Shown piece after piece: positions 6,743 to 32,130 of a stretch of 37,776 bases of DNA. Each line of letters opens with the position of its first letter. The stretch's first letter is position 1. The notes beneath the pieces are model-generated. The model was not told the origin of the DNA. It searched no databases and saw nothing but the letters and a program-made list of their open reading frames with translations. Origin of the DNA: Lenisia limosa (Eukaryota > Protista > Breviatea); assembly GCA_001655205.1 (NCBI GenBank), contig LPNZ01010094.1, positions 1 to 37,776 of the forward strand. The letters run 5' to 3'. The translations under genes and the position numbers were made by a program.

Positions 6743-9488
6743 ATGAGGAGGATATTTAATTTGTTTGTAGTTGTCGCTTTGGTGGCTCAGTTGACTGGTA
6801 CGGGATTCCAAACAAGTGTTGTAGCTGCTTTCTATTCTTCTATCCCCTCTTTGCTTGCTTCCCATTATTCGAATATTATATTCTGATAATAAATAAAATA
6901 TTGTGACATGATAAAGATGGTTTGTCTCCTTCTCACATTTTTTCCGACATTCCTATGTCATGTCATCTTAGATTCATTCTGCTTTCAAAACCAGCTTGAT
7001 TTCACTATGGCAATACCCCTCATTTGCACTAATTTACCGTGTGTTCTAAAAGCGTCGAAATAACTCAATGAGAAGCCCTTCTTCGTCTTGCCTTTTTTAT
7101 TTGTCATCTGCTGAAAGCTGTTCAGTATCGGTTCTAATTTCTCTAGCGGCCACGTTTGACCCGATGTTCATCGTGGCCGTTACAACTCCAATGAGCCGCA
7201 ACCAAGCCATCAACTATGCTGCAGTTCCTGAGATGGTGAGGTTTGGTAATGTGTTTTTTTGGGAGTATAGCTTCAAGTCGCACGTCAGACGGCCAAAATA
7301 CTGAAAGTAAATTCAGAGGAAAAAAAACACACAATAATGGGTGTTTTTTTTTAAGTTGGCGTGATTATGATTATCCGCCACCTTATCCGCCTCAGAATTG
7401 GTCCCCATCTCATCGTGTCATGTCAGAATCTAAATTCACTGTTTCACCACTACAGGCTCAGCGACTCACCCGAGACGGTGCTGATGGCGTGTTTGTGGGC
7501 GGAACCACGGGTGAAAGTCTGTCTCTCACTATTGCTGAGAGAAAGAAACTCCTTGGTTGGTGGAGACTGTAAGTGATTGCCAACATAATCCTGAGATAAT
7601 TATCGAGGTACACAGAAAGCTGAGTACCAGAGTTGCAAGGCAAATGATTGGGTGAATTAATATTACGACTGCCAAGTCAACAGCATGGTTCCCAAAGTAT
7701 TCGATTTTTCAAAAAATGACTCAAAAATCGAGACGATGTTCTTTTCCCACATGGTAAATATAAAACCTTATCACATCCCTTTCAGAGGCCTGGATTGCGA
7801 CTGGAGAGAAGCTCGAGATTTACGCCCATGTTTCCGCCGACACGTTGGCAGACTCATTAGATCTGGCTAATCACGCGCGGGTTGTTGGCGCTGACGCCAT
7901 TGTGGCCATGCCCCCTTCATTCTTCAAACCGGGAACCGCCAAACGTGTTTTGGAAGTTCTGGTTGGCTTCAGCACTGCAAATTTCCCAGTATAAATTAAT
8001 ACAATATATTTTTTGGTTTTTTAAAAAAGTAGCAAGATACTTTTATTTTGGGTTAAGTAAGGCCTTGGCTATGTATGCCAGTGCGTTCACTTTGCCTACC
8101 ATTTAAATCAATTAATTTTACAGAAACCTGTTGCCGCCGTGGCCTCCGAACTTCCCTTCCTCTATTACCACATTCCATCCATGACTGGTGTCAACATCAA
8201 GGTTTACGACCTGCTTAAGACCAATGACGAGACAAACCTTGTAAGCTGGGACTTCTCTTAAATGAACATATTGGTGGGAATGTTTTTTAGTCTATTAAAG
8301 CTCTAGATCCCCTCTCTGAAGGGCTTCAAAATGACTGAGATTGACGTTCATGATTTCGGCCTTGCTGCTCATGTGGGATAGCTGGAAGGGTGTTAGTTTT
8401 AGAGCTCTTTATGGTAATATGATAGTCTTTGTCGAGGTTTTATTAGAGATAATTTTTGGTAAATAAGTAATACATATTATATGTATCATTACTCTATGGA
8501 TTCGCTGGTTCAGCATACTTTTGCATCACCACTATCATCACCTTTTCAGCACAACAACTCAAAGTACTTCTCATACTTCGGCAAGGATGAGGGATTCCTT
8601 CAGGGTCTGGTTTCGGGCGGAAAGGTGATTGGGGTTTCAGATTGGTTCACAAAAAGACAGTTACATTTTTGGTTAGCAATAGATATGATATAATGTATAT
8701 AATTATACATATCATATCATATATATATATACTATGCATATCTATATATCATATATATATACTATATTAGATATGATATTTCTAAAAATTTTAAAACCAA
8801 TTTAGAACTCTCTTGGTGTGTTTCGGTTTTGGTCAGCTACAGCCTTTTGATATTTCTCATTTTTACTTTTCATTGAGTTTATGGATTCATTTTCACATTT
8901 TAGGGTGTTGTTGGATCAACCTATAACTTCGGTATCCCCCATTACAAGACTGTGAGCGCCTTCTTGGCATTTGTGTAATGAACTCTGGATATTCTGTTCC
9001 GCTACGAAACAATCAACATTTGACCGTTCAAGGTGGTCAACCAGCTCAACAAGGGTGACCTGACTGGCGCCATGGACACAATGGCCAATATTCAAAAAAT
9101 GTGCCACATTGTTGTCCAGTGAGTGGGATAAGTTCTCTTGTAGAATTGAAGATACACCAATAAGAGTACTGCACATCAAAGTTCCTGTTAATCCTCTTTC
9201 AGCTACAGCCCAACTCCATCGGTGAAGCACATCACCTCTTTTGTTGGCCCGGACCAAGGACCCACTCGATGGCCCCTTGAGGTGGGGGNNNNNNNNNNNN
9301 NNNNNNNNNNNNNNNNNNNNNNNNNNNNNNNNNNNNNNNNNNNCTTTTCAGCCTTATTCTGTATTATACCACATTACTTTTCGCTACAATAAATTCCTTT
9401 GGTTTTCAATTGACTTTCTCAGGACATGAGAGACGAGGATGTGAAAGAAATGAAGGTGGAATTGGCAAAGATCGGCTGGAAGTTTTAA
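6743..9488 (+). CDS. NPL: N-acetylneuraminate lyase (DHDPS/NAL class I aldolase family) with N-terminal signal peptide; 11 exons, 318 aa
   Basis: Exons 6743-6797, 7147-7235, 7456-7555, 7786-7961, 8124-8240, 8307-8372, 8550-8624, 8904-8951, 9033-9118, 9203-9281 and 9423-9488 sum to 957 nt with one open frame. Motifs: VAVTTP, VFVGGTTGESLSL, ADAIVAMPPSFFKP, PFLYYHIPSMTGV (catalytic Tyr), GFKMT (Schiff-base Lys), FGKDE and GVVGSTYNF. The last two are NAL-type (GxDE and GSTYN) rather than DHDPS-type. Confidence 0.9.
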
Positions 9489-18007: not shown

Positions 18008-21000
18008 TCATAAGCTGCCCGGTGCTGTTCGGGAAGGGGGGAGATTGGGGACATCAACGATGTCTCTGCCGTTCTGTGACCGGGTTAGCCGTGGCACATC
18101 TTCCCGAATATTGGACTCCTTCCGTATTGACCCCCAGGCAAATAGAACAGAATGAGTGCAGGTTAATTTAAATAAGGAAGCAAAACAAAAAGAGTATCTC
18201 GCATGTTGCCCCCCCCCCACATTATACTCAACTTCCCTTTTGGTGCATGTTGCGGCCCGTTGACACTCGAACTTGGGGGGTACGGTCGTGTCTGGATGGG
18301 CGGAAGAACAGGCTTCCTCTTGATCCTAAAAGTGTGAGATTCCTTAACAGAAATGTCATCAAATGAATTGCCGTACAATAGCACAATGAGAGAAAAGAGG
18401 CCTACGTGTTGTCGTTGGAATATGAGGATTCGTTCTCTAGTTCATCGCCAAATGCCATTCCACCCGTTGATGCATTGGGCTGTGGAGGGTGAGAGTAGTG
18501 CTACAAACAGTGGACTATTTGAAAGCTAACATTTTGCTTGGTTTCAAACAGCATGGCTTTAGAAATCTAAGAAAGAACACTCAAAATATTCCACTGAGTC
18601 AAACCTGGGAATGTGTCCTTCGGGGTTTGTTTTCCGGCTAAAAGGTGAGGACGACCACACTCATAATGCAACATGATGAACAGCTAAAGCGACTTTATTA
18701 CTCCTGCTTTTATAATTGAAAAAGATTACCCCTCACTCCCTTCACCCAATATCTACACCACATGGAAAACACCCCTTACCCTGAAGGAAACTTCAGCTGA
18801 GACTGTTGAAACGTCAATGGGCCTATAATCATCAGTATGGCTTAGATTCGGAATAAGTAGGTACAGATTTGAATTCTNNNNNNNNNNNNNNNNNNNNNNN
18901 NNNNNNNNNNNNNNNNNNNNNNNNNNNNNNNNNNNNNNNNNNNNNNNNNNNNNNNNNNNNNNNNNNNNNNNNNNNNNNNNNNNNNNNNNNNNNNNNNNNN
19001 NNNNNNNNNNNNNNNACGTCGGCTGAGGAGAGTGGTAAAGCCAAGGAACATTTTGATTAAAAAAATTACTCATGAAAATGGGAATTACTTTGAAAAAAAC
19101 ACACCCAATACAGTGTGTAAACCATGCTTGTTGAGAGGATAGAAAATAAATATTTGTAACACTACGAATGAAGGCTGGTAAATCCCGGGTACCAGGGGCT
19201 CTTTCCTTCGTTGTTTGATAGCCCCACAGAGAGAGAACTCGATTAATAGTCCGCCTCCACCATTGATCGATAAATCCTGAGGGGAGTATTAATTGTCGTT
19301 GGAGTGGGGGTCCAGAATGAATGTTACCAAAGACATAAACAACTAAGAAAAAAAAATGGATGAAATATCATGCTTGATCTGAGATATATGTTATGCATAT
19401 ACTCTATTCATCCACATTTTGCTTTTTCATATCCTGAAAACATCAATGTTTCCAACCTTGGTGCTTTGACTACACGTGACTTCCGTCACAGCGTAGTTTG
19501 TTTGGATGATGCGGTTGCACGTGTCAACAGTGTCTGAAACAATAAGAAAGAAAACATTTATGCTATGATATACAGCGTATGCGCCATGAAATACATTTAC
19601 TTTATCAGACACCACATACCACCAAAAAGACTGTAACGGTTCTGAAGGTCACCAACAAGGGCAGCAACGACAGGCCCCGAGTGGACCGCAATAACCAGTG
19701 AGATTGGGATGTTCTGATAGGTGAGTTTGATGTGGATGAAAATTTAGAAAAATACTGAACATCATATAATCAAGAAGCAATATTAGGACAGTTCTATCAG
19801 TTGATGGGGGTATCCTCAGAATACCTTGAACTGGAAGAGAGCGATTTCCTCAAATGCATTGATTGCTAACACCAGAGCCTAGGAAGAACGTTAGGCAAAA
19901 ACAGGTACCTCGTAATGTGTATAAGTGCATGCGTGTGGTGGGGAAATGAAGCTTTTTGGTGAGTCAATACAAGTTTTAAAACTGGTTTTGCTATTTGCTT
20001 TTGTTGTTAAAGCAAAAGGAGTTCAAGAACTATACAAACTAGCTACATGGTTTCCTACATTTGTTGCTATCGGGTTTGGAGTGTCGTTGTTCACGTCTTT
20101 GCTGAGACCTCCAACCATCAAAAAGGAATCTGGGGAAGTAAGGGGAGGGGCGGAGGAAACGCAGCAACTGAGGATTTACCAAGCCATAACCTGCTCAAAA
20201 AAGGAATATATACTACAAATCCCATAATTCTTGAAAAATAATTCAATACTTCTTGCCTCTGCAGCATACTTCCAACAGTGTCTGGCTTGAAAAGGTCGTG
20301 TTGATGAGCCAGCCGTGAGAACACACTAAAACAGTGAATGACTGGTCTCCATTTTTTGTGCTTATACAAGCTCAAGAAGCCGCGCTGCTAAAACACACGA
20401 GCTCTCACTTTGATATTCGTCCGAGTAGATCCGAGAGATCCACCGGCGAAAGCGTCAGTGTGATTTCCTCGAAATTGCGCATAACCTGTTGAAAGTCAAT
20501 TGCGATAATGGAATATTGTACCAATCTACTAAGAGAGCACGCGGGTTGAACAAAGTCCGGTCACTGCCACATTCCCCTCCCCCCACAGCGTTGACAATAG
20601 TGGCAGAGGAGAAGGTTTCAGGTTCAACCGTTTTGCCGCTCTGAGGGGGTGAGGGAAGGTTTACCCTTATTTATCAGATGTGGAAATGAAAAATTAATAA
20701 CTGCTTGTTTGAGATTAAGGCAAGATTCAAGATGTGCTTGTGTTTCTCAACTCCTTCATCAGGTAGAGTAATTCCGCTATTTGGTTACTCACCTGCAGTG
20801 CCTCTTGCACAGAAATTGGTATTGATGGCTCAATGGCAAGCTGAAAGAGTGAGTGATAGATATTGCAAGAATAAGTTGAAACACAAGACACCTTCAGTTA
20901 TGCCCACTTGGTACATATTCTCTTCGGGAGTTGAGACGTCTTGAAGAATGTACTCTAACCGCTCAATGATCTCAGGCCTGCACAGTATGACATTAGGTAT

Positions 21001-24000
21001 TTTAAAACACTCATCCTCTCTGGCAATACAAATTGCTACGACACCCCCCACCATAGAGGGCGCCTTAACGGGTTTTCAGCCCAGCATTCGACAAACAACG
21101 ACACAAGTCCGACGGGAATGTCGTGGTTCAAAGGGATGACGGGACGAAGCTGTTTGGGAGTCAAAAATATAACAAGAATCCTGAACATGCAAGAAAGACA
21201 GAAACGGCTACACCACTCAGAGGAGTTGTATAATATATGGAATTTGGAAATAGTCGATGTGTCGATTTCTGGTTCGATAATAGTACCCCCACCGGTTCCA
21301 AACAAGGCGTAGTAACAGCGCGCATAATATCGCGTCCACGCATGTTGGCGTAAGGGCGGTGGCGCGTGGCAAGCTCCCAAAGAACTAGGGGGGGGGGNNN
21401 NNNNNNNNNNNNNNNNNNNNNNNNNNNNNNNNNNNNNNNNNNNNNNNNNNNNNNGCTTGTGAATGGAGTGTGTCAGAAGAGGCAATAGTAGCACCGTTCT
21501 CATACCTATTCCGAAGGAGTAAATGTCGGACTCAACAGTGTGTGGATGCCCCTTCAGAACTTCCGGCGACGCCCAGGGTATTGTGGCTACCTGGGGGGTG
21601 ACAATCCCAACAACAATAGATTAAAACAGAAGGAGTCAGCAAAAGGAGGATAATAGAAAGAGCTACGTTTAAAAGCTCTCAACACAATTGACCCGAACCT
21701 TTCGTTGCTTCTTGTCGGACACCACACCCTCAGCAACATTGAAATCCGAAACCTGAAGCATGAAACATCAACCTGCCAAAACGACCATTCCTATCTTGGT
21801 TTGAGAGCACACCTTCAGGGTGAAACCCGAGTCAATCAGCATGTTGAGACTCTTGATGTCCCTGTGGATAATCTGGGGGGTGCATCCATGCAGACATGAG
21901 ATTCCGCGGGCAGCATCAAGAGCAAGGTTGAGTCTAAGGGGCCATGGGAGGTCCACCTAAATATTAGTTTGGATAGCCATATCCAATACTGCATATTACT
22001 ATTGTCACTAGCGGGGTACTACATATGAGAATGAAAAAGATGGAATTAGCTTGAAACTCGTTTTAAATCGCCCTCAAACAGTTGGGTTTGCAAGCAAGTG
22101 GTAAAGGGACCCCTTCTCCATCAGTTCCAGCACGATGCATCTGGAGCATAAGAGCAACCCGTAGTACAGAGAAAATATGAACAAGACGTTCAGCATTAAA
22201 TCTTAATGATTCAAATGTTACGTCTTGGGATTGCAAAGAAAATGTACCAGTCATTCCGACCTCTCGCTCGAAGGCAATGTGCAGGCTCCATGGAACATAA
22301 CAATGTTGCGATGCCTAACGAGTAAATTCCGTTTGAGAAGGATGAACTGGGCAAAGTTACTCCACAAAAAACCCTAAAACTATGGTAGAACAGCCCTCAC
22401 ACCTGAGGCGGAACAAAGTAGCACATTCCCGTCTGAAGGCTGCCTCCAATTGTGCTGCCACACTCCTGCTGTGTCAGGAATGTTCACATTTATCAGTTTC
22501 GGAACAAATCTACAAAAAAAAACACTTCAANNNNNNNNNNNNNNNNNNNNNNNNNNNNNNNNNNNNNNNNNNNNNNNNNNNNNNNNNNNNAAGTTCGACG
22601 ACGGCTCACTATACGACCGGTCTGGATGGTGAGAATCTGACTACATGACAAGATATACACATTAGATTCATCATATATATATGTATATTATTATGTACAT
22701 GAAGTATTATATTTTACATCATATCTATCTATGTATGTAGTGTAATAGTGGTGAAATAGCAGTTAATTATGCCCCCACTTGGTCCAAATGTCTGGTTCGT
22801 CATCAGCAGCGACGCTGGGGCAATAGAAACTAAGGTGTTAGCTTGAAGAGGTATCAAAATTCCATTCCTCCTAAACTCTGAATCAGAGTTCGTTCCAAAC
22901 AAAGCCCAAATTAATAAATAAGATGATAAAGTGTTACAGGCCACCATACAAATCATATAACGCAACCAATTACAAAGTGGTGTATTAAAAAATCCTATAC
23001 TATATCATATATCATATGATATATTTCACTCATTATGCAGGGAATGGGATTGGAGCTCACATGGCGGTTTTTGATTGAGGTTGTAGGCGAGGGCGTGTGG
23101 CTGATTGGCTGTGGGGGTCCGACGTTCGGTAGTCGGCGCTGTGGTGAGTGAATCGACATCAAATTTGCATTCTCCAATGTAGCAAGTCGCACATTAAATA
23201 CAGAACCACGTAATAATCATCCCAATTAATTGAACTTTTTCCTGGGTTATAAGAAAGAAAAAAATCCGGGGGAAGCTCTTTAGTTCACCAGCATATGTTT
23301 CTCTTCCTCGTACATTTATCTGTGCTGACATGCTCCAGTCCAATTCCCTCCTCAACATCATACTCATGATTGCGGTCACTCTGGGTGAGGGGGGGTTGGA
23401 GACAATAGATACAACAGTTAATGCTCATCAATGGCGAAGGCATTCGATTAGTACGATGACAATTTCCCCCCGACATACACTGTGGGTTGGTTCCTGGGGG
23501 CTTTCTTTGAGCTGACCTGACGGAGCAGAGCTTAACTATGGTGTCAGGAGGTAAAAGCAAACAAAAACGGGCAAATACAAAACAAAGACGGGGGCAGGGG
23601 TGGGGGGGTGAAGAGAAAACGCAACTCTTGGTAACACCGCCTACAACAGATCCGGACTTTCTCTGGTGTCGGCTGAACATCACACTAAATATGTGAGAAC
23701 CTGTTTCATACTTGCCACAATCGGTCTCCGATACAACCACGGCCCACTTGAAAGGATGGGTAGTGGAGTCTTTGGTAAAGACTTTGACTGCAACTGGTGT
23801 TCCCTGAAGCATCACGAGGTGAAAAGAAGAAGCTCAGAGTATATGATACATACAATATAATAAAAAAATATAATATAATATAATATAATACATAATACAT
23901 AATATATACTATAGAAATAAAAAATGAGGTAGTATCTGGCCGAAGCCCTCAACACCATCACGCTTACAAGAGATATTGGAGTATAGATTAATATGAATTC

Positions 24001-27000
24001 ACCCAATCATTTGTCTTACAACTCTGTGCACACAGTTTTTTCCGCGTACATACATAAGATACATATAAGATATGTTTGAAAACTGTGCTCATTCAGCCCT
24101 TTTACGCACCAACACAAATTAGTTACTCTTAAACGCCCACATTCAGCATGGCCCTGAAAACGATGGCCGCTGCCCCTCGACCAATCTCGGGACCAAACTT
24201 GATAGCGTCGGGATCCACTTGCCATGCCGAATAAAGGTTCCGTCGGTCTCGCCTGATCTGCGGACAGATGAAAGGTGAACAAACTTGGGGCACAACTCTG
24301 CAAAAGCATTTCCTATTCTATCTTGGTCCCATTTTCCAAGATGATACCCACACCACCGTACTTTGAGGAGCAGAAGAACAGCAATCATTGACAGGGTCGT
24401 CACAGATGCAATGAAGCCTGCAATGACAACCATACTACAAAGTCAACAGAATTACAACTACCTGAGAATGAATGATGAAATATTAACTATTTAGTTTTAT
24501 TCTATCAGAACTATTCGTCAATTCAGACAACCACGTACCTGGTTTGGTTGTCCAGAATGGTCGCAGGATCTTCAACACTACAGACGTCCAAACTAACGGT
24601 CCATCCAGGCAGCAGCTAGAAGGTGAAATGTAATCGTTTATGGAGAATCGAAGGAATACCTCATCAAACTAATCTCAAATAATCATTGCAAACTACACTA
24701 CAGCAATATGCACAGCTCCAATGTTCTCTGTTGTTGGGAAAATTATGCAACCAAAAAGATGAGATAATATGGATAACCCCCCACAGTGAAACTGCCGTTG
24801 TGGAACTGTGAAATAGACACCATCACCGTTCCTATAAAATGACAAATGCTTATCTTTGAAGAAACAAAGGAAAGTGAGGTGAAGAGGCAAAAGCAAACCT
24901 GTGTTACACTGCTCCTCAAACGGGCCAATCTTGAGCGAGTCCCTTGATTATCATGGGGGGGAAGGGCACAGTATCGTGTACTATGATATACGCTCAAGGT
25001 CCAAAATTAGGTCGTTAATTCGAATTAATGTCGTTAATTATTTACGGTCGCCAAATCAGCTATTCCCCTTCAAAACAGTAATATATTTCTGAGATATTAC
25101 TGTATTTGTTTATGAAAAGAAACATAGAAAAAAAAATAACCTTTCAAAAATTCAGTTTTTTTTTTGCAAGTTCAGCAGACTTTATCGCGAAAATTTAACT
25201 ATTTTGCGCCATTGCGCGATCCTTTTTTACGAGTTAAATTGTTGTGAAGTTGACCGTAACATGAAAAAGAGACCGTCACAGAAAATTGAATTAACAACAA
25301 TAATTCGATATTCACGACATAGTTTAGGACCACGAGTATATACTATATAATACTATTAAGCATTAGATGGAGGCTTTGCTAATGGTTTGTGCCAACTGGC
25401 TTTATGACCAATATGGGGCAATTGCCAGAACTTAAAACCTTGAACCTGATCTACCAAAATGTACCCCCAATACCCAAGGGTGATTTCTCCATAGGTGTAG
25501 ATGGAATCGAGGAAGGACTCCCGAGTGAGCGGCAACTGTGCTCTCTAAAATGTGAACCGTGGTGCTAAAAACATCGAAATTAATTGTTTTCCTGGCATTT
25601 GGCGATGAACTAGAGAACGAATCCTCATATTCCAACGACAACACGTAGGCCTNNNNNNNNNNNNNNNNNNNNNNNNNNNNNNNNNNNNNNNNNNNNNNNN
25701 NNNNNNNNNNNNNNNNNNNNNNNNNNNNNNNNNNNNNNNNNNNNNNNNNNNNNNNNNNNNNNNNAGCCCTCAACCGTACTCGGCGTGGCAAGGGCTAGCA
25801 CGGAGCTGTCTCCGGAGTAGTCCACAAGGTCGGACCGGAATTGGACAATGAACGAATCGTCCGAGTTTGGTAAAGGCACCACCTGTGTCGTCAGATCAAG
25901 GGCTGTAGATCAAAGATGTAGTCAAGCATACCTGACTCAAAAAGACGTTATCGAGGTAGCCAGGCGACTGGTTGTAGAGCTCTTGGAGGGAAAGAGTGCC
26001 TGTGGGCGACAGCATATAGTACACTGTGTTGACTGAAAACCCGTCCTAATGTGTAAACATGTTTGGAGGAATAGAAGAATGATGAGCAATCATAAAAAAA
26101 AACCTCAAGTTTAAATCAAATATTTGTATCAGGGGCACCCTACTTTGAACATTTCGAGCCCTTGGGTAACAGCAACTCCAACACCAAAAATGAAAACTGC
26201 CTAATAAGGTAAGTCGCAAGACCTGAAAACCCCCTGTTATACAAAATCGCCTCATTCCTACATCCGTATTGGGGTGGTCAAACGTCAAGTGCTTGATAGC
26301 CAAGGCAATATTGGTGGAAAAGCGTGGGTAAGATCCCGACGCTGCCAACTATAGCGGGGTTACAATAACGACAACTGTGGCTGCAGTCCCCCTCCGATAC
26401 CAAAAAAGGGTACATGACAACTCTCGATAAATTTCCATAATAACTTCGTGAGGTACTGTTTCCTATGAAATGGGTTCACATTAGCAAGAAAACGACCCTG
26501 GTACTTCATAAGTGAAGCATATCGGACTGCCTTAACACACTAATAGACCCACTGGGAGGCTCAAATTGGCGAGAACTGCCTCCAGTGATGCCAGTGAACT
26601 CTAATCTGTCAGAAGCAGACAACTAGTCAGGCAGTATTTTGAAGGAATGGTCCAACAGAAGAAATCCAAAACAAATTGCATACATATCATATAATATGTA
26701 TCGCATTAATTGGATTAGAATTGTTGTTAAATGAGTACTACATAACTCAAGGATGATCTTACTTCTTCAAACAGTTCTTTCATGAACTCTTCCAACACCC
26801 CTTACAGTTCCAAATTCATCATCCTGGTACAACGCAATGATAACGGGAAGGTCGGCATTTTCGCGAGTTTTATCACCCTGGGAAGTGACGGGCAATGATG
26901 CTGAGGTGAAATGGGTATTTGTGACGGGCAGCTGAGTGAAATGGGTATTTGTGACGGGCAATGATGCTGAGTGAAATGGGTATTTGTAACGGGCAATGAT

Positions 27001-30000
27001 GCTGAGTGAAATGGGTATTTGTGACGGGAAATGATGCTGAGTGAAATGGGTATTTGTAGAGTACAACTCTAATATTGAGTATAGCATTAAATAATTTATC
27101 TAACCCTCACCCCCCTACCACATCGGCACTCACTTCGACATCGAAGGTTTCCACCAGATGGTTGGCCAAATGCGCTATTTCGTCGTAGTAGGAGGCTCGC
27201 ATATGAATCACATTCCTCATAAAGGGATAGCGAAGTCCTGGAATGGTAAATTCTCCCTGATGGAACAATCCCATTTCTGTACAAGATTTTTACTCCCATT
27301 TCTAATAATACATCTCACCACAAACTGCTGAACAGACGTGTAATATTTAATTGTTTAATCCCCCCCCCCCCCCNNNNNNNNNNNNNNNNNNNNNNNNNNN
27401 NNNNNNNNNNNNNNNNNNNNNNNNNNNNNNNNNNNNNNNNNNNNNNNNNNNNNNNNNNNNNNNNNNNNNNNNNNNNNNNNNNNNNNNNNNNNNNNNNNNN
27501 NNNNNNNNNNNNNNCAAAAGAAATAGGATTCTTGTGGAGGAGTAAATTGGGATCCCAGAAACAATAGAGGCCACTCTGTTGGTGTTCCCCTACACAAGAC
27601 CTCAAAAAATGTCTAAATACTGATACACTCTTCTGTAAAGATGAGCTATTTGATCCACTGTGGTGTTAATATGATATGAATCAAGTTCAATGCTGTGATA
27701 CCACCCGAGACCCCCAACCTCCAATGTTGTCTCCGAGCCGAAATAGCCGAACAGCGCAAATACCTCATCATCGTTAAGCAGCTCTTTCGTGTTCATGACT
27801 GTGACATCAGGCTATGTTGGTGAGTTGACTGTTATTACCCAGTGAGGATCTCAGGATGTGAAGATATCATTTCCCATGAATAATATTACATTATCAAATC
27901 TGCTCTCATTGGTATCATCATAACCTGTACATGAACAATGCAAATGGGAACTAAATGACCATTTCAGCCCCCCCCCCCCCNNNNNNNNNNNNNNNNNNNN
28001 NNNNNNNNNNNNNNNNNNNNNNNNNNNNNNNNNNNNNNNNNNNNNNNNNNNNNNNAAAGTCAATTGAAGAAAGTATTCCACAGTAAACATAGTTGAAAAA
28101 GCAAATATAAAAAAGATAGCAAGGAAGGCAATTACGAATTGAGAGTTCTAACCCTGACACTTCAGCCCATATGAATGGAAGAAATTGCCTTCACCTGCCC
28201 ACAGCCCAAATAGCCGCTTGGGCGCCAAATAAAAATTCCAACGCGACTGGATGCTGAGTCTGCGACAAAAACGTGGACTGCAGGGTTAATAAAAGGGCTT
28301 TTCATCAAAATCATATCATCCAATTTCAAATAAAATTCCCAAAGTTCGGCTTCCCTTTTGAGGGAAAATACTCGCCAGCAACAGTGACAAAAATACTATC
28401 CCATCCCCTCCACCTGTCCAAGAACGATTGGTAGCTTATCAATGCTTGTAAAGGGGTCGACACCACAGGACTTCACCTCAAACGCCTCTTCCAAATGGTG
28501 CACTACCGTATCCCCTAAACTTGTCAATTGCCGCTTGAGAGAAATGTAACTGAAAGCAAAAGGGAGACAGTACCAACCAAAAACAAGGTTAATGTCCGTG
28601 AATACTCCGGCAGATGCGGTATTAAGAACTGTCACCTGCAAGGGTCAACATGATTACTCATTCTGAACTTGTGTATTGCTAGAGATGTTCCATTGCTTAC
28701 GTCATCATTGATGTCCATTGATCCCGAAGGAATAGACCCTTGTTTGGCCGAGTAGTAAGAGCCTTGTTTAAGGGGGGTGCCACTCATCGAGCTGGATGAA
28801 CATGATGAGGCTGTTTCCTGATAAAGTAAGCATATGGGAGGGGGGTAGTCCAAAATATCCGTATCCTAGGGTAGGAAAATTGAAATGCTGTTGGTCTCAC
28901 AAATGCAAATGTAAGACCCAGGGTTATTTTGATCAATGAACTGTTTATGTCGTATCTCAATAGTCTGGTACTTCNNNNNNNNNNNNNNNNNNNNNNNNNN
29001 NNNNNNNNNNNNNNNNNNNNNNNNNNNNNNNNNNNNNNNNNNNNNNNNNNNNNNNNNNNNNNNNNNNNNNNACAGCATCCGAACTAGCTTTCAAGTCTTG
29101 TATGACTTCGAAGATATAGGTTACTCTCATGCCCTGCCAAATTAGGAAAGCTCCAAAAGAGGAAAGTGACACGAAATATCACAGTATATAATCCCACCTG
29201 GTTGCAGCGACAATTGCAACTTCGCGTGCCCTTGCAATCCGGTGCAAATGGACCCAGTCGCAACCCCTCAATGTTAACAATTCCGTATTCCAGGAACGCT
29301 GGTGCCATGTCAGCAGCTACAATGCCTGATAAAGTTAGAAGAATGGGTGGTGTCAGTTTATACGTATCACATCAGAAAAGACACTGCACAATAAAGCTAA
29401 TCTTGGAACATCAAGGGACATTGGTATTAGGTAAATAGTGAATTCAAACACTATCCAGTCTTTTCCTCCCAAAATAACTGAGAGGGGTAAAAATTTATAA
29501 AACAAAATAATGCCATCATCATACTAGTCAGGTTTTTATCGAGACTCAGCTCCCGAAGAATACGAATAATCATTTTGCCGAGAAGAAATCCCTCAAGACT
29601 AGAAACGTTAGATGTTATGTGAAATCCCTCAAGACTAGAAACGTAACATGTTATGTGAAATAGACCCCCAAAACATACGCATAAACATCCATTGGCGGAA
29701 CATCGTCCAGTCCATATTTGACCGAACTACAAGCTGCCGCTTGGAGATACGACGAAATGATACAAGACACGGGATCTGAGCAATTTTTCTGAGGGGTGAA
29801 ATGGATTTCTGGTACAACTAAGTACTAACTCTTGGCTGATTTTGAAATTTTGATATTCCAATATTGCAAATATAACAAAAATGTAAATAATGTAAAGGAC
29901 GCGTCTATGAGTCCTCCCATCCAGGTCCCCACATAAGCTTCGGTCATGAAGTCTAACATTGCGGTACGGGTTGCAAGGTCCGGGCTTGTTATGTTGGGTA

Positions 30001-32130
30001 GGAATTGTGAGGGGACAAGAGGAACGGACGAACTGAAAAAGACCTTTGACACAATCTAGAGGATAAGTCCGTTTTGATTGTAGAGAAAAATACTCAAAAG
30101 TTATCTATCATTCCTTTATGCCTGAGTTGGATATTTTGACACAGAAGCCACCCCACAGTTGTGTAGGACACGGCGTTGAGCAAACATGAGGGAGACGTGG
30201 GGGACAAGAAAAACATGTACGTCTGATGGGTAACCATTACACGGTAATTGAGTTTCTCTTTTAAAACACCCCCCCCCCCCNNNNNNNNNNNNNNNNNNNN
30301 NNNNNNNNNNNNNNNNNNNNNNNNNNNNNNNNNNNNNNNNNNNNNNNNNNNNNNNNNNNGAGGACTCCAAGCAGTTTGTGACAAAGAAGACTACCTCAAC
30401 TTGAGTGCTACAATGTCAGACACAAAAGTGTTAACTGTTTCAAAATGTGTACTTGGCTATATTGCTTCTGAGTTATCCAGTTGAAACAGATGCCTGCCCT
30501 CCCACGATGAATCCGCAAAGCCATTCACTGCTTTTTTCGCATCATGAAGATCGATAAATAAAGGAATACTGTGGCTAATCTGTAATCTTTAGTACTTCCT
30601 TCAAAACATGTAAAATCATTTCTTGTTGAAGAGAGGTACGACAACATTCAATGTCATCATACCTTCAGCTTCAACCCGAGCTGGGCCAAAAGAGCCGCTG
30701 TGCCGTCCCGTCCGTCGGAACCTATGGTCGTAAATTGCCGAAGGAATGATAAAAACATTGTATCTAGCCAAAGAAGAGAACATTTTAATAAAGGATGATT
30801 ATGTGCAAGCTGAAATCATTACTCCCACCCACCCTTCCCTAACATATTTCAATGTCCTAAGTCAGACAGAACACCATTACTATACTTACTATACGATATC
30901 CTCCAATTCCCACCATAGGAGTTGTCCACGTAAACAACGCCGAAACGAGATACTCCCATCCGGTCGCGGGCAAAGGTTATCAAAGACACCAATTCGTCGT
31001 AGTAAGAGATTCGCATATTGATGATGTTCTCCTGGTGGTGGTATGGTAATCTCAAATCATATCATTGACAGAAAGGACGATTACGAACGAAATGATTCGA
31101 CTTAAATCAATAAATAGAATGCGCGTTTCATATACAAAGAATAAAAAGGTCCTCAAACAAGAAGAGACTTAAAATTAAAATGAGGTCAATGGTGATACAA
31201 CTCACAAACAACTGGAGCACGCAAAAAATAATATAATATATGTAGATATCGAAGCTTAAATAAAAGTTCGTTCATCCCATCATCCTGCCCACTTTGAATG
31301 GGTTTCTCAAGCTTTGGGCCCCGGAATAGGGGCCGATAATAGGCACTCCAGTCTCAACAGCAACTGTGTAGACCGCCTCAGTTGTGGGCGTCCCCACCAT
31401 GCCTAAGATTGCCAGCGTATCTGGGTCTATATACTATTAGACGAAAATATGCTCTGTTTCTGACACAATCCGTAGGGTGTAATATGGACTTGTTGGAAGT
31501 GGCTTATGTGGGAGGGGTAATGATAAAGAAAATTTGATAAGTTGATGTTATCGTTATTGAGTTTATTCTCTGATATTAAAAAAACATCAAAAACCATCAA
31601 AAACCATCAATAATTCACAAAACAAACACCCCAAGCCAAAGCAAGGGCTTTGGCTTGGGCCCTGCGGTAATGATGCTCTGGCGAGTTGCCATGAGATCAC
31701 AACCCTGTTGTCAACTTCCGATACACCCGCTGGCCTACGATCTTCAACAAGCTGTCTGGTGATAGAAACCGCTTGATCAGCGTCGTATCCGTCGTCAACA
31801 TGAAACAGCTGAAGGCCAACCCCGCCAATACCGCCCCTGAAGATCATAAATAAGGTTCACTTAGATGCTTAGAGCAGAGTAAGACCAGCAACAGCCCTAT
31901 GATTTCAATTGCAGGGAAGATATCAAAAAACAAAAAACCAACTTTTCATTTTCCTTTGATAGCGCAAGCACAACACCTTTCAAGTAAGAATCTCCAAGAA
32001 GGAAGGCTGATCCGCTGATAGACGTTGATGAAACAAAAGTGAAATTCGCCGTGCAGTCAGTACATGGTTTAACTTCGTATAACGAAGCAAACGCTATGTA
32101 CGGACACAGCAGCAAAACTAAGAGTAACAT
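18008..32130 (-). CDS. Single-pass receptor: signal peptide - 2x type I periplasmic-binding (VFT) domains - TM - TKL Ser/Thr kinase - degenerate guanylyl-cyclase-type domain - Pro/Ser-rich tail (about 45 exons)
   Basis: ATG at 32130 ([16 protein letters not shown]), followed by a chain of phase-compatible exons carrying all the motifs listed in the domain features. The putative last exon ends [19 protein letters not shown] at 18008. A few exon edges fall in N gaps, so continuity as one gene is inferred from consistent domain order and phases. Confidence 0.85.
18398..18457 (+). repeat. Copy A of a perfect 60-bp inverted duplication (partner 25593-25652)
   Basis: AGGCCTACGTGTTGTCGTTGGAATATGAGGATTCGTTCTCTAGTTCATCGCCAAATGCCA; its exact reverse complement lies at 25593-25652. 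Confidence 0.95.
19450..20850 (-). other. Class III nucleotide cyclase domain of receptor-GC type, predicted inactive
   Basis: [10 protein letters not shown]|[18 protein letters not shown]|VMRNFEEIT (cf. [34 protein letters not shown]); [17 protein letters not shown]|NSFLMVGGL (cf. DVYKVETIGDAYMVVSGL); [24 protein letters not shown]|DTVDTCNRI (cf. [33 protein letters not shown]). Confidence 0.85.
20950..24257 (-). other. TKL-group protein kinase domain (Raf/MLK/CTR1-like), catalytic motifs retained
   Basis: [28 protein letters not shown]|GTPVAVKVF ... [14 protein letters not shown]|[12 protein letters not shown] ... [16 protein letters not shown] ... [16 protein letters not shown]|VSDFN ... 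[17 protein letters not shown]|VLWELAT..PY ... [10 protein letters not shown]. Confidence 0.92.
24362..24434 (-). other. Transmembrane helix exon of the receptor
   Basis: [24 protein letters not shown], followed in the next exon by the basic stop-transfer segment IRRDRR. Confidence 0.9.
25593..25652 (-). repeat. Copy B of the 60-bp inverted duplication, intronic, abutting an N gap
   Basis: Exact reverse complement of 18398-18457; it ends at the first N (25653). Confidence 0.95.
26885..27055. repeat. Intronic minisatellite, five copies of a ~35-bp unit
   Basis: Unit GTGACGGGCAATGATGCTGAGTGAAATGGGTATTT; copy lengths 36, 30, 35, 35 and 35 nt, head-to-tail with no spacers. Confidence 0.95.
29585..29656 (-). 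repeat. 36-bp tandem duplication spanning a 3' splice site
   Basis: GAAATCCCTCAAGACTAGAAACGTTAGATGTTATGT followed by GAAATCCCTCAAGACTAGAAACGTAACATGTTATGT (two mismatches). Each unit contains TTTCTAG|TCTTGAGGGATTTC on the - strand. Confidence 0.95.
31630..31659. repeat. Perfect 13-bp hairpin in a receptor intron
   Basis: CCCAAGCCAAAGC-AAGG-GCTTTGGCTTGGG. Confidence 0.9.

Follow-up and report, generated by a model that had tools for sequence, protein, structure and literature searches.

The locus at positions 18008-32130 of contig LPNZ01010094.1 of Lenisia limosa (assembly GCA_001655205.1) raises the question of whether a single gene may encode a membrane receptor in which a live protein kinase is joined to a dead nucleotide cyclase, the opposite of the arrangement known in the animal receptor guanylyl cyclases. 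The window that was analysed is the whole stretch of 37,776 nucleotides (nt) in which this locus lies. As the stop-free pieces indicate, the locus is coded on the minus strand, and the predicted protein of ~1,350 residues comprises, in order, a signal peptide, two type-I periplasmic-binding (Venus flytrap, VFT) domains, one transmembrane (TM) helix, a kinase of the tyrosine kinase-like (TKL) group, and a class III cyclase-homology domain (CHD). With a probability of roughly 0.6, the locus is read here as one gene, rich in introns, whose product is a type I receptor Ser/Thr kinase that crosses the membrane once and has a tandem VFT, a TKL kinase, and a C-terminal pseudo-cyclase. As far as gene-model logic and homology can show, the predicted architecture is real.

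Ectodomain, kinase, and cyclase-homology domain

The spliced model (~1,369 residues including X at breaks) was assembled by script from window coordinates. In this model VFT1 and VFT2 align over 336 residues with 26% identity (E = 1.8e-8), and the model scores 121.5 bits on a hidden Markov model (HMM) of three receptor adenylate cyclases, with 62.4 bits for VFT1 and 59.8 bits for VFT2. In blastp, the ectodomain matches three receptor adenylate cyclases with E values of 1e-17, 5e-14, and 7e-12, the best being an adenylate cyclase of Acrasis kona (PF25493 + PF13458 + PF00211). The tandem VFT reading is therefore confirmed. On the unspliced exon pieces, Peripla_BP_6 is matched in profile order (35-75, 71-108, and 109-154), together with weak matches to PF25495 and PF25493, two families that Pfam derives from the ectodomains of trypanosome adenylate cyclases, and exon E4 appears as Peripla_BP_6/ANF_receptor in the protein atlas. 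The C-terminal end of VFT1 reads GPFAPDC..CNCRCNQ. An ectodomain search with the Acrasis protein P0222 as query found just one further Acrasis protein.

The kinase is ~290 residues long and lies ~20 residues after the membrane helix. It retains the Lys, the Glu, the HRD Asp, the Asn, and the Asp of the DFG motif (here DFN), and it carries the later motifs WASPE, DIYSFGIVLWEL, and CW..P..RP. Two of its exons have Pkinase/PK_Tyr_Ser-Thr matches in Pfam, and a blastp match to the TKL kinase P0065 has an E value of 1e-54. The best solved relatives of the exon carrying the HRD motif are plant receptor-like kinases (BIK1 and BAK1), IRAK, RIPK2, and CTR1, all of the TKL group. From these matches and the retained residues, it is therefore concluded that the domain belongs to the TKL kinases and that none of its catalytic residues has been lost. 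It appears to be the only kinase of the locus: tblastn with 150 kinases matches the kinase exons at 21000-24330 only, and the 19 kb downstream give no match, even with the threshold relaxed to E 20. Among 1.84 billion representative proteins, none exceeds 63% identity to the HRD exon, and there is no copy or close orthologue on record.

The CHD is recognized first of all by the unspliced exon 19713-19621, which matches Guanylate_cyc in Pfam with an E value of 6e-4 (19.8 bits against a cut-off of 21.9) and has soluble guanylyl cyclase alpha/beta, GC-C, and NPR1 as its best solved relatives; the short CHD exons gave no matches to solved structures. In hhalign the domain is in register with 95 other cyclase domains (P = 0.0015), and in its spacing, GPVVAALVG(4)RYSLFGD, it agrees with the animal-type (IIIa) subgroup. 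In an alignment with a canonical CHD of the Mastigamoeba protein P0278 (pairwise E = 1e-6, 143 residues), FADI is changed to NAVM, IGD to VGN, and VN..AR to VD..NR. Class III cyclases work by an established two-metal mechanism. With the metal Asps and the transition-state Asn replaced and the substrate pair changed, a homodimer of this CHD should be inactive, making neither cAMP nor cGMP. P0278 itself (Mastigamoeba m51a1_g8760, 1661 residues) contains ANF_receptor/Peripla_BP_6, a kinase fragment, a CHD fragment of the cyclase-kinase type (see below), PAS domains, and a second, canonical IIIa-type CHD. It is this second CHD that is the best match to the CHD of the window, and P0278 may be a fused gene model.

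At the junction of kinase and CHD, two in-frame models, A and B, are available. Model B, with three small exons (CHD exons 1-3 in Table 1), has donor scores of 8.2, 3.7, and 8.2 bits and acceptor scores of 6.7, 8.8, and 4.9 bits, calculated with splice matrices trained on 14 other introns. The three exons encode a canonical N-terminal CHD segment, which aligns residue for residue with LPASVVDVLKKEPGKTIAQKFDSVTILFADIVEF (including LPASVVDVLKKEPGKTIAQKFDSVTIL) of the normal CHD of P0278; in the cyclase fold, the N-terminal helix and the first strand canonically lie here. Model B was therefore adopted on the basis of its splice scores and this alignment. Model A, in which a GTACCA donor at 20915 is joined to 20528 to give YSIIAIDF with metal Asp 1 retained, was rejected, the donor scoring 0.4 bits and the acceptor 1.6 bits. 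From the end of the kinase to the N-terminal helix of the CHD there are ~15 residues, with prolines among them.

These results bear on a preliminary description of the locus, made from the sequence alone. Its domain order is borne out by the exon chain and the domain homologies, and its choice of an ATG at 32130 as the start is confirmed. It had taken the kinase to be live and the cyclase to be dead; the Lys, Glu, HRD Asp, Asn, and DFN Asp are indeed present in the former, while the catalytic positions of the latter hold Val, Asn, Asp/Ser, and Asp, with Arg alone retained. The likeness that it saw between the tandem ectodomain and the trypanosome-type receptor cyclases agrees with the HMM score and the Acrasis match, and the three Pfam domains that it named (Peripla_BP_6, Pkinase/PK_Tyr_Ser-Thr, and, below the cut-off, Guanylate_cyc) are all matched on exon pieces. 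The helical linker that it placed between the two enzymes, however, is not supported, as the segment there is short and contains prolines, and no coiled-coil signalling helix is present.

It may be considered how such a receptor would work. Outside the cell, the two tandem VFT domains presumably close on a small ligand. Inside, the TKL kinase is probably the output enzyme, because every catalytic residue is retained. Cyclase-homology domains are obligate head-to-tail dimers, and the dead CHD is for this reason most likely a dimerization or allosteric module, which would determine how the two kinase domains are placed relative to each other upon ligand binding. Such a dimerization role is reasonable to infer.

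Alternatively, the CHD could be a working half-cyclase that has lost its metal side and pairs with an aspartate-supplying CHD protein of the same genome, in which case the receptor would control both cyclic-nucleotide synthesis and phosphorylation. In its favour, the Arg of the Asn/Arg pair is retained, and the dimer interface and the beta4-beta5 region are well conserved. The transition-state Asn, however, is replaced by Asp, and the Asp/Ser pair in place of Lys/Asp or Glu/Cys, together with the change of the RIGIH Arg to Val, indicates that the 'C2-like' side is damaged too. The half-cyclase explanation, which would require a putative partner CHD, is considered unlikely.

Relation to known receptors

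The animal receptor guanylyl cyclases (NPR1/NPR2 and GUCY2C) have the same order of type-I binding-protein ectodomain, TM helix, kinase fold, and CHD as the predicted protein, and the CHD of the latter is nearest in subtype to the guanylyl/adenylyl cyclase subgroup IIIa. In contrast, they have a single ANF_receptor VFT where two VFT repeats are found here, a pseudokinase of the RGC group without the catalytic HRD Asp where a TKL kinase with HRD and DF(N) is found here, and an active CHD (two metal Asp, Glu/Cys, Asn, and Arg) where a degenerate one is found here. A coiled-coil signalling helix also lies between their kinase-homology and cyclase domains, whereas none is present in the predicted protein. 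The kinase-homology domain of NPR1 or GC-C is absent among the 60 best of the 85 PDB matches of the HRD exon at E ≤ 0.001. The specific kinship to the animal receptors that the preliminary description supposed is thus not upheld by the TKL-type kinase, and the protein is outside the animal receptor guanylyl cyclase family. Its picture of an 'inverted' animal receptor holds for the domain order, the kinase motifs, and the dead cyclase, but not for the kinase, which is TKL and not an RGC pseudokinase, or for the ectodomain, which is of the receptor-adenylate-cyclase type.

The receptor adenylate cyclases of kinetoplastids and heteroloboseans (ESAG4/GRESAG4 type; PF25493/PF25495 + PF13458 + PF00211) have a single TM helix and a homologous tandem VFT that carries the GPF..C motif. 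In these proteins, however, the TM helix leads straight to an active CHD of another subtype, whereas here a complete kinase comes between the two, followed by a dead CHD. The invertebrate Venus kinase receptors share a VFT ectodomain, a single TM helix, and an active kinase output with the predicted protein (PMC4026697), but their VFT is a single one of class-C-GPCR-like (G-protein-coupled receptor-like) type, their kinase is an insulin-receptor-like tyrosine kinase, and they lack a CHD. The HRDIKSLN of the window's kinase is a Ser/Thr-type catalytic loop with best matches in the TKL group, unlike the tyrosine kinase of the Venus kinase receptors.

Live kinases next to cyclases are already known from the amoebozoan 'cyclase kinases', of which 67 have been published from Acanthamoeba (PMC4053784) and 43 from Physarum (PMC4758236). 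Further members were found in Pelomyxa and Pandoravirus. At least nine proteins of Mastigamoeba balamuthi, whose gene identifiers are tied to this species (PMC8136499), combine ANF_receptor/Peripla_BP_6 with a kinase, Guanylate_cyc, and a second kinase. The uniqueness that the preliminary description implied for a live kinase beside a cyclase behind a binding-protein ectodomain does not survive these examples. The cyclase kinases resemble the predicted protein in having an extracellular sensor (often SBP_bac_1, PBP_like_2, or ANF_receptor), a single TM helix, and a live TKL kinase directly before a class III CHD, and their kinases are the best matches to the window's kinase. They differ in that nearly all those examined with an intact CHD carry a second kinase after it, whereas there is one kinase here; in that the sampled CHD (P0078), which belongs to the fungal/trypanosomal type (FSDVESST), has intact catalytic residues, whereas the CHD here is IIIa-like with these residues replaced; and in the tandem VFT, which comes here from another lineage.

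The predicted protein could accordingly be a derived cyclase kinase of the amoebozoan type (ectodomain-TM-kinase-cyclase-kinase) that has lost its second kinase and its cyclase activity, rather than an independent assembly. With the whole kinase as query, the cyclase kinases P0065, P0104, P0059, P0078, and P0111 top the 150 retrieved proteins with 36-41% identity, and 8 of the 150 best matches of the HRD exon are kinase-cyclase-kinase proteins, with SBP_bac_1, PBP_like_2, Kelch, or DUF4215 ectodomains. Bacterial binding-protein ectodomains (SBP_bac_1, PBP_like_2, and ANF_receptor) are also in use among these cyclase kinases. Against this, an HMM of eight cyclase-kinase CHDs gives the CHD a score of 0.6 bits, phmmer finds no significant match, and the subtype differs; the ectodomain matches the Acrasis receptor adenylate cyclases and not the Mastigamoeba ANF_receptor domains; and in the kinase tree (FastTree) the window's kinase lies on a long branch of 1.33 with no supported placement, its highest identity being 41% to the first kinase of P0065 (K1). 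Two defining features of the cyclase kinases, the second kinase and the CHD subtype, are lacking here, and descent from them is regarded as improbable.

The predicted protein is best described as a mosaic of an ectodomain of the receptor-adenylate-cyclase type, a kinase nearest to those of the cyclase kinases, and a CHD of the animal-cyclase subtype. What is new relative to the known kinase-cyclase receptors is the tandem VFT, the single kinase, and the degenerate animal-cyclase (IIIa-like) CHD. It may tentatively be suggested that the receptor was assembled independently, with a tandem VFT of the trypanosome/heterolobosean type driving a live TKL kinase and a IIIa-like CHD kept as a pseudo-enzyme, which would dimerize the receptor or pair with other putative half-cyclases of the genome.

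Gene model and assembly gaps

The gene runs on the minus strand from the ATG at 32130 to the first in-frame stop after the CHD at 19087-19085, and its coding sequence is divided into ~46 short GT-AG exons (Table 1). The cytoplasmic part was spliced by hand and then checked by script; its 20 exons, from 24257 to 19085, are stop-free and in frame, with introns of 60-1282 nt and the common donor pattern GTNNG. The ectodomain scaffold was obtained with a simple splice/codon gene finder, which over-called small exons and took the wrong frame at 30055-29933, and was corrected by the homology between VFT1 and VFT2. It forms four in-frame blocks: E1-E7 (to gap 30281-30359), E8-E9, E10-E15 (to gap 27374-27514), and E16-E26 (through the TM exon into the kinase). 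E9 (ending at 29933) stops in phase 0, whereas E10 (the GPF..C exon, starting at 29325) requires phase 1; this clash is due either to an overlooked micro-exon, to an alternative donor, or to a base error.

Table 1. Features of the predicted receptor gene and the gaps that adjoin it (window coordinates)
Feature	Position	Strand	Evidence or remarks
Exon 1	32130-31943	minus	Start ATG, signal peptide, start of VFT1; chain E1-E7 in frame
VFT1 (type-I periplasmic-binding fold), E1-E10	29198..32130	minus	Pfam on exon pieces, receptor-cyclase HMM
VFT1 exons E1-E5	32130-31943, 31836-31739, 31426-31293, 31031-30914, 30721-30663	minus	
VFT1 exons E6-E10	30579-30506, 30407-30360, 30222-30157, 30055-29933, 29325-29198	minus	30407-30360 enters gap 30281-30359
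VFT2, E11-E25	24539..28635	minus	In-frame chains, VFT1 duplication, receptor-cyclase HMM, tblastn to Acrasis P0222
VFT2 exons E11-E15	28635-28414, 28277-28195, 27950-27890, 27811-27719, 27589-27515	minus	27589-27515 enters gap 27374-27514
VFT2 exons E16-E20	27256-27134, 26877-26773, 26348-26262, 26200-26144, 26045-25932	minus	
VFT2 exons E21-E25	25882-25775, 25544-25474, 24942-24899, 24831-24785, 24615-24539	minus	
TM exon	24434-24362	minus	Followed by KIRRDRR, positive inside
TKL protein kinase, 11 exons	20908..24257	minus	Hand splicing, in-frame translation, Pfam, PDB matches, blastp
Kinase exons 1-6	24257-24141, 23803-23748, 22465-22403, 22314-22261, 22140-22080, 21956-21813	minus	
Kinase exons 7-11	21752-21699, 21590-21506, 21384-21293, 21149-21052, 20977-20908	minus	
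VAVK Lys codon	23785-23783	minus	
Alpha-C Glu		minus	Within FRRECATL
HRD Asp codon	21860-21858	minus	IHRDIKSLN
DFN Asp codon	21746-21744	minus	Asn replaces Gly at 21740-21738
Degenerate class III CHD, 9 exons	19085..20840	minus	Pfam, PDB, hhalign, P0278 alignment, splice scores
CHD exons 1-5	20840-20793, 20640-20587, 20485-20409, 20325-20270, 20129-20059	minus	20840-20793 is the N-terminal helix
CHD exons 6-9	19878-19825, 19713-19620, 19533-19457, 19276-19085	minus	Stop at 19087-19085
Metal Asp 1	20485-20483	minus	Canonical Asp; here Val
Metal Asp 2	20270 and 20129-20128 (split codon)	minus	Canonical Asp (GD); here Asn (GN)
Purine-specifying pair		minus	Canonical Lys/Asp or Glu/Cys; here Asp/Ser
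Transition-state Asn	19525-19523	minus	Canonical Asn (TVN); here Asp (TVD)
Transition-state Arg	19513-19511	minus	Canonical Arg; retained
Arg of RIGIH		minus	Canonical Arg; here Val
Gap	30281-30359		Cuts exon E7
Gap	28975-29071		Intron
Gap	27981-28055		Intron; flanking exons join in frame
Gap	27374-27514		Entered by exon 27589-27515; no GT donor ahead of gap
Gap	25653-25764		Intron; flanks join in frame as ATPST-RAQLPL
Gap	22531-22590		Intron; flanks join in frame as HPFK-SVAAQLE
Gap	21398-21454		Intron; flanks join in frame as SFGI-V-LWEL
Gap	18878-19015		Past first in-frame stop; 3' untranslated region, or intron if more 3' exons exist

The window has 41% G+C and 20 N-gaps. Six of the gaps in Table 1 were listed by program, and 30281-30359 and 28975-29071 are two extra ones outside that list. 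Most gaps are edged by runs of 10-14 G or C (e.g. 27360-27373, 27967-27980, 30269-30280, and 21388-21397), and the assembly evidently breaks at homopolymers, a trait described for the Physarum genome in the Physarum genome paper. The gene end at 18008 of the preliminary description would require additional 3' exons past gap 18878-19015. Such exons, of which 18500-18405 with a GTAGGC donor is a possible example, would give that end, and they have no link to the CHD exon across the gap. A perfect 60-nt inverted repeat has its arms at 18398-18457 and 25593-25652, the second arm, within a VFT2 intron, ending exactly at gap 25653-25764; it may be a real intronic inverted copy of the end of a possible 3' exon, or a chimeric contig end or other assembly artefact. 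Two intron tandem repeats lie at 26931-27058 and 29585-29656, one with a 35-nt period (58-nt overlapping copies, 97-100% identity) and the other with two 36-nt copies (94% identity). The polyA RNA run X1 (47 Mb), the only RNA run of the organism, contains 5% of the sampled words of 19016-21397 and 14% of those of 19016-19290, which is weakly compatible with low expression of the 3' part and is silent on the junctions. Elsewhere in the window, a plus-strand open reading frame piece at 7243-7572 with TRDGADGVFVGGTTGESLSL resembles a member of the DHDPS/N-acetylneuraminate-lyase family.

Several points weigh against the proposed receptor. The kinase has DFN for DFG and GRGAAA for the glycine loop, and therefore its activity is not certain. 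One CHD exon is significant by itself, and the remainder of the domain rests on the spliced model; the retained Arg and the conservative change of Asn to Asp leave room for a heterodimeric half-cyclase role. No orthologue that shares this architecture was found, which leaves no basis for judging conservation or selection. Where the gene ends on its 3' side is uncertain; the last 27 residues, past the CHD, resemble non-coding sequence, and further exons may follow. Finally, two exons enter gaps, the phases clash at one junction of the ectodomain, and every splice junction is predicted from genomic sequence. These last features, the 20 gaps, the perfect 60-nt inverted copy adjoining one of them, and the absence of any copy of the protein from the library of 1.84 billion proteins would also suit a gene-model or assembly artefact in which two neighbouring genes (a receptor kinase and a cyclase remnant) or a decaying pseudogene are read as one, but this is improbable, considering that the 20 cytoplasmic exons are in frame without a stop, that kinase and CHD are separated by introns of just 67-152 nt, that the CHD part has neither a start codon nor promoter space of its own, and that the exons of its N-terminal helix directly follow the last kinase exon.

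Implications

The value of the finding is limited for now, as it concerns one predicted gene model in a gapped assembly with no orthologue found, and the general idea of a kinase and a cyclase behind a binding-protein ectodomain has already been published. In the animal receptor guanylyl cyclases, a dead kinase controls a live cyclase, and in the amoebozoan cyclase kinases both enzymes are live. If the proposed reading is true, the series would be completed by a receptor whose kinase is live and whose cyclase is dead, and this receptor would provide a natural test of whether a CHD dimer can be a pure scaffold for kinase activation. The sensors known for eukaryotic receptor Ser/Thr kinases would then also include a tandem solute-binding ectodomain. 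If, furthermore, the receptor was independently assembled, the animal receptor guanylyl cyclase would have in it a natural mirror image, and the chain of binding protein, kinase fold, and cyclase fold would have arisen more than once, with one enzyme or the other silent.

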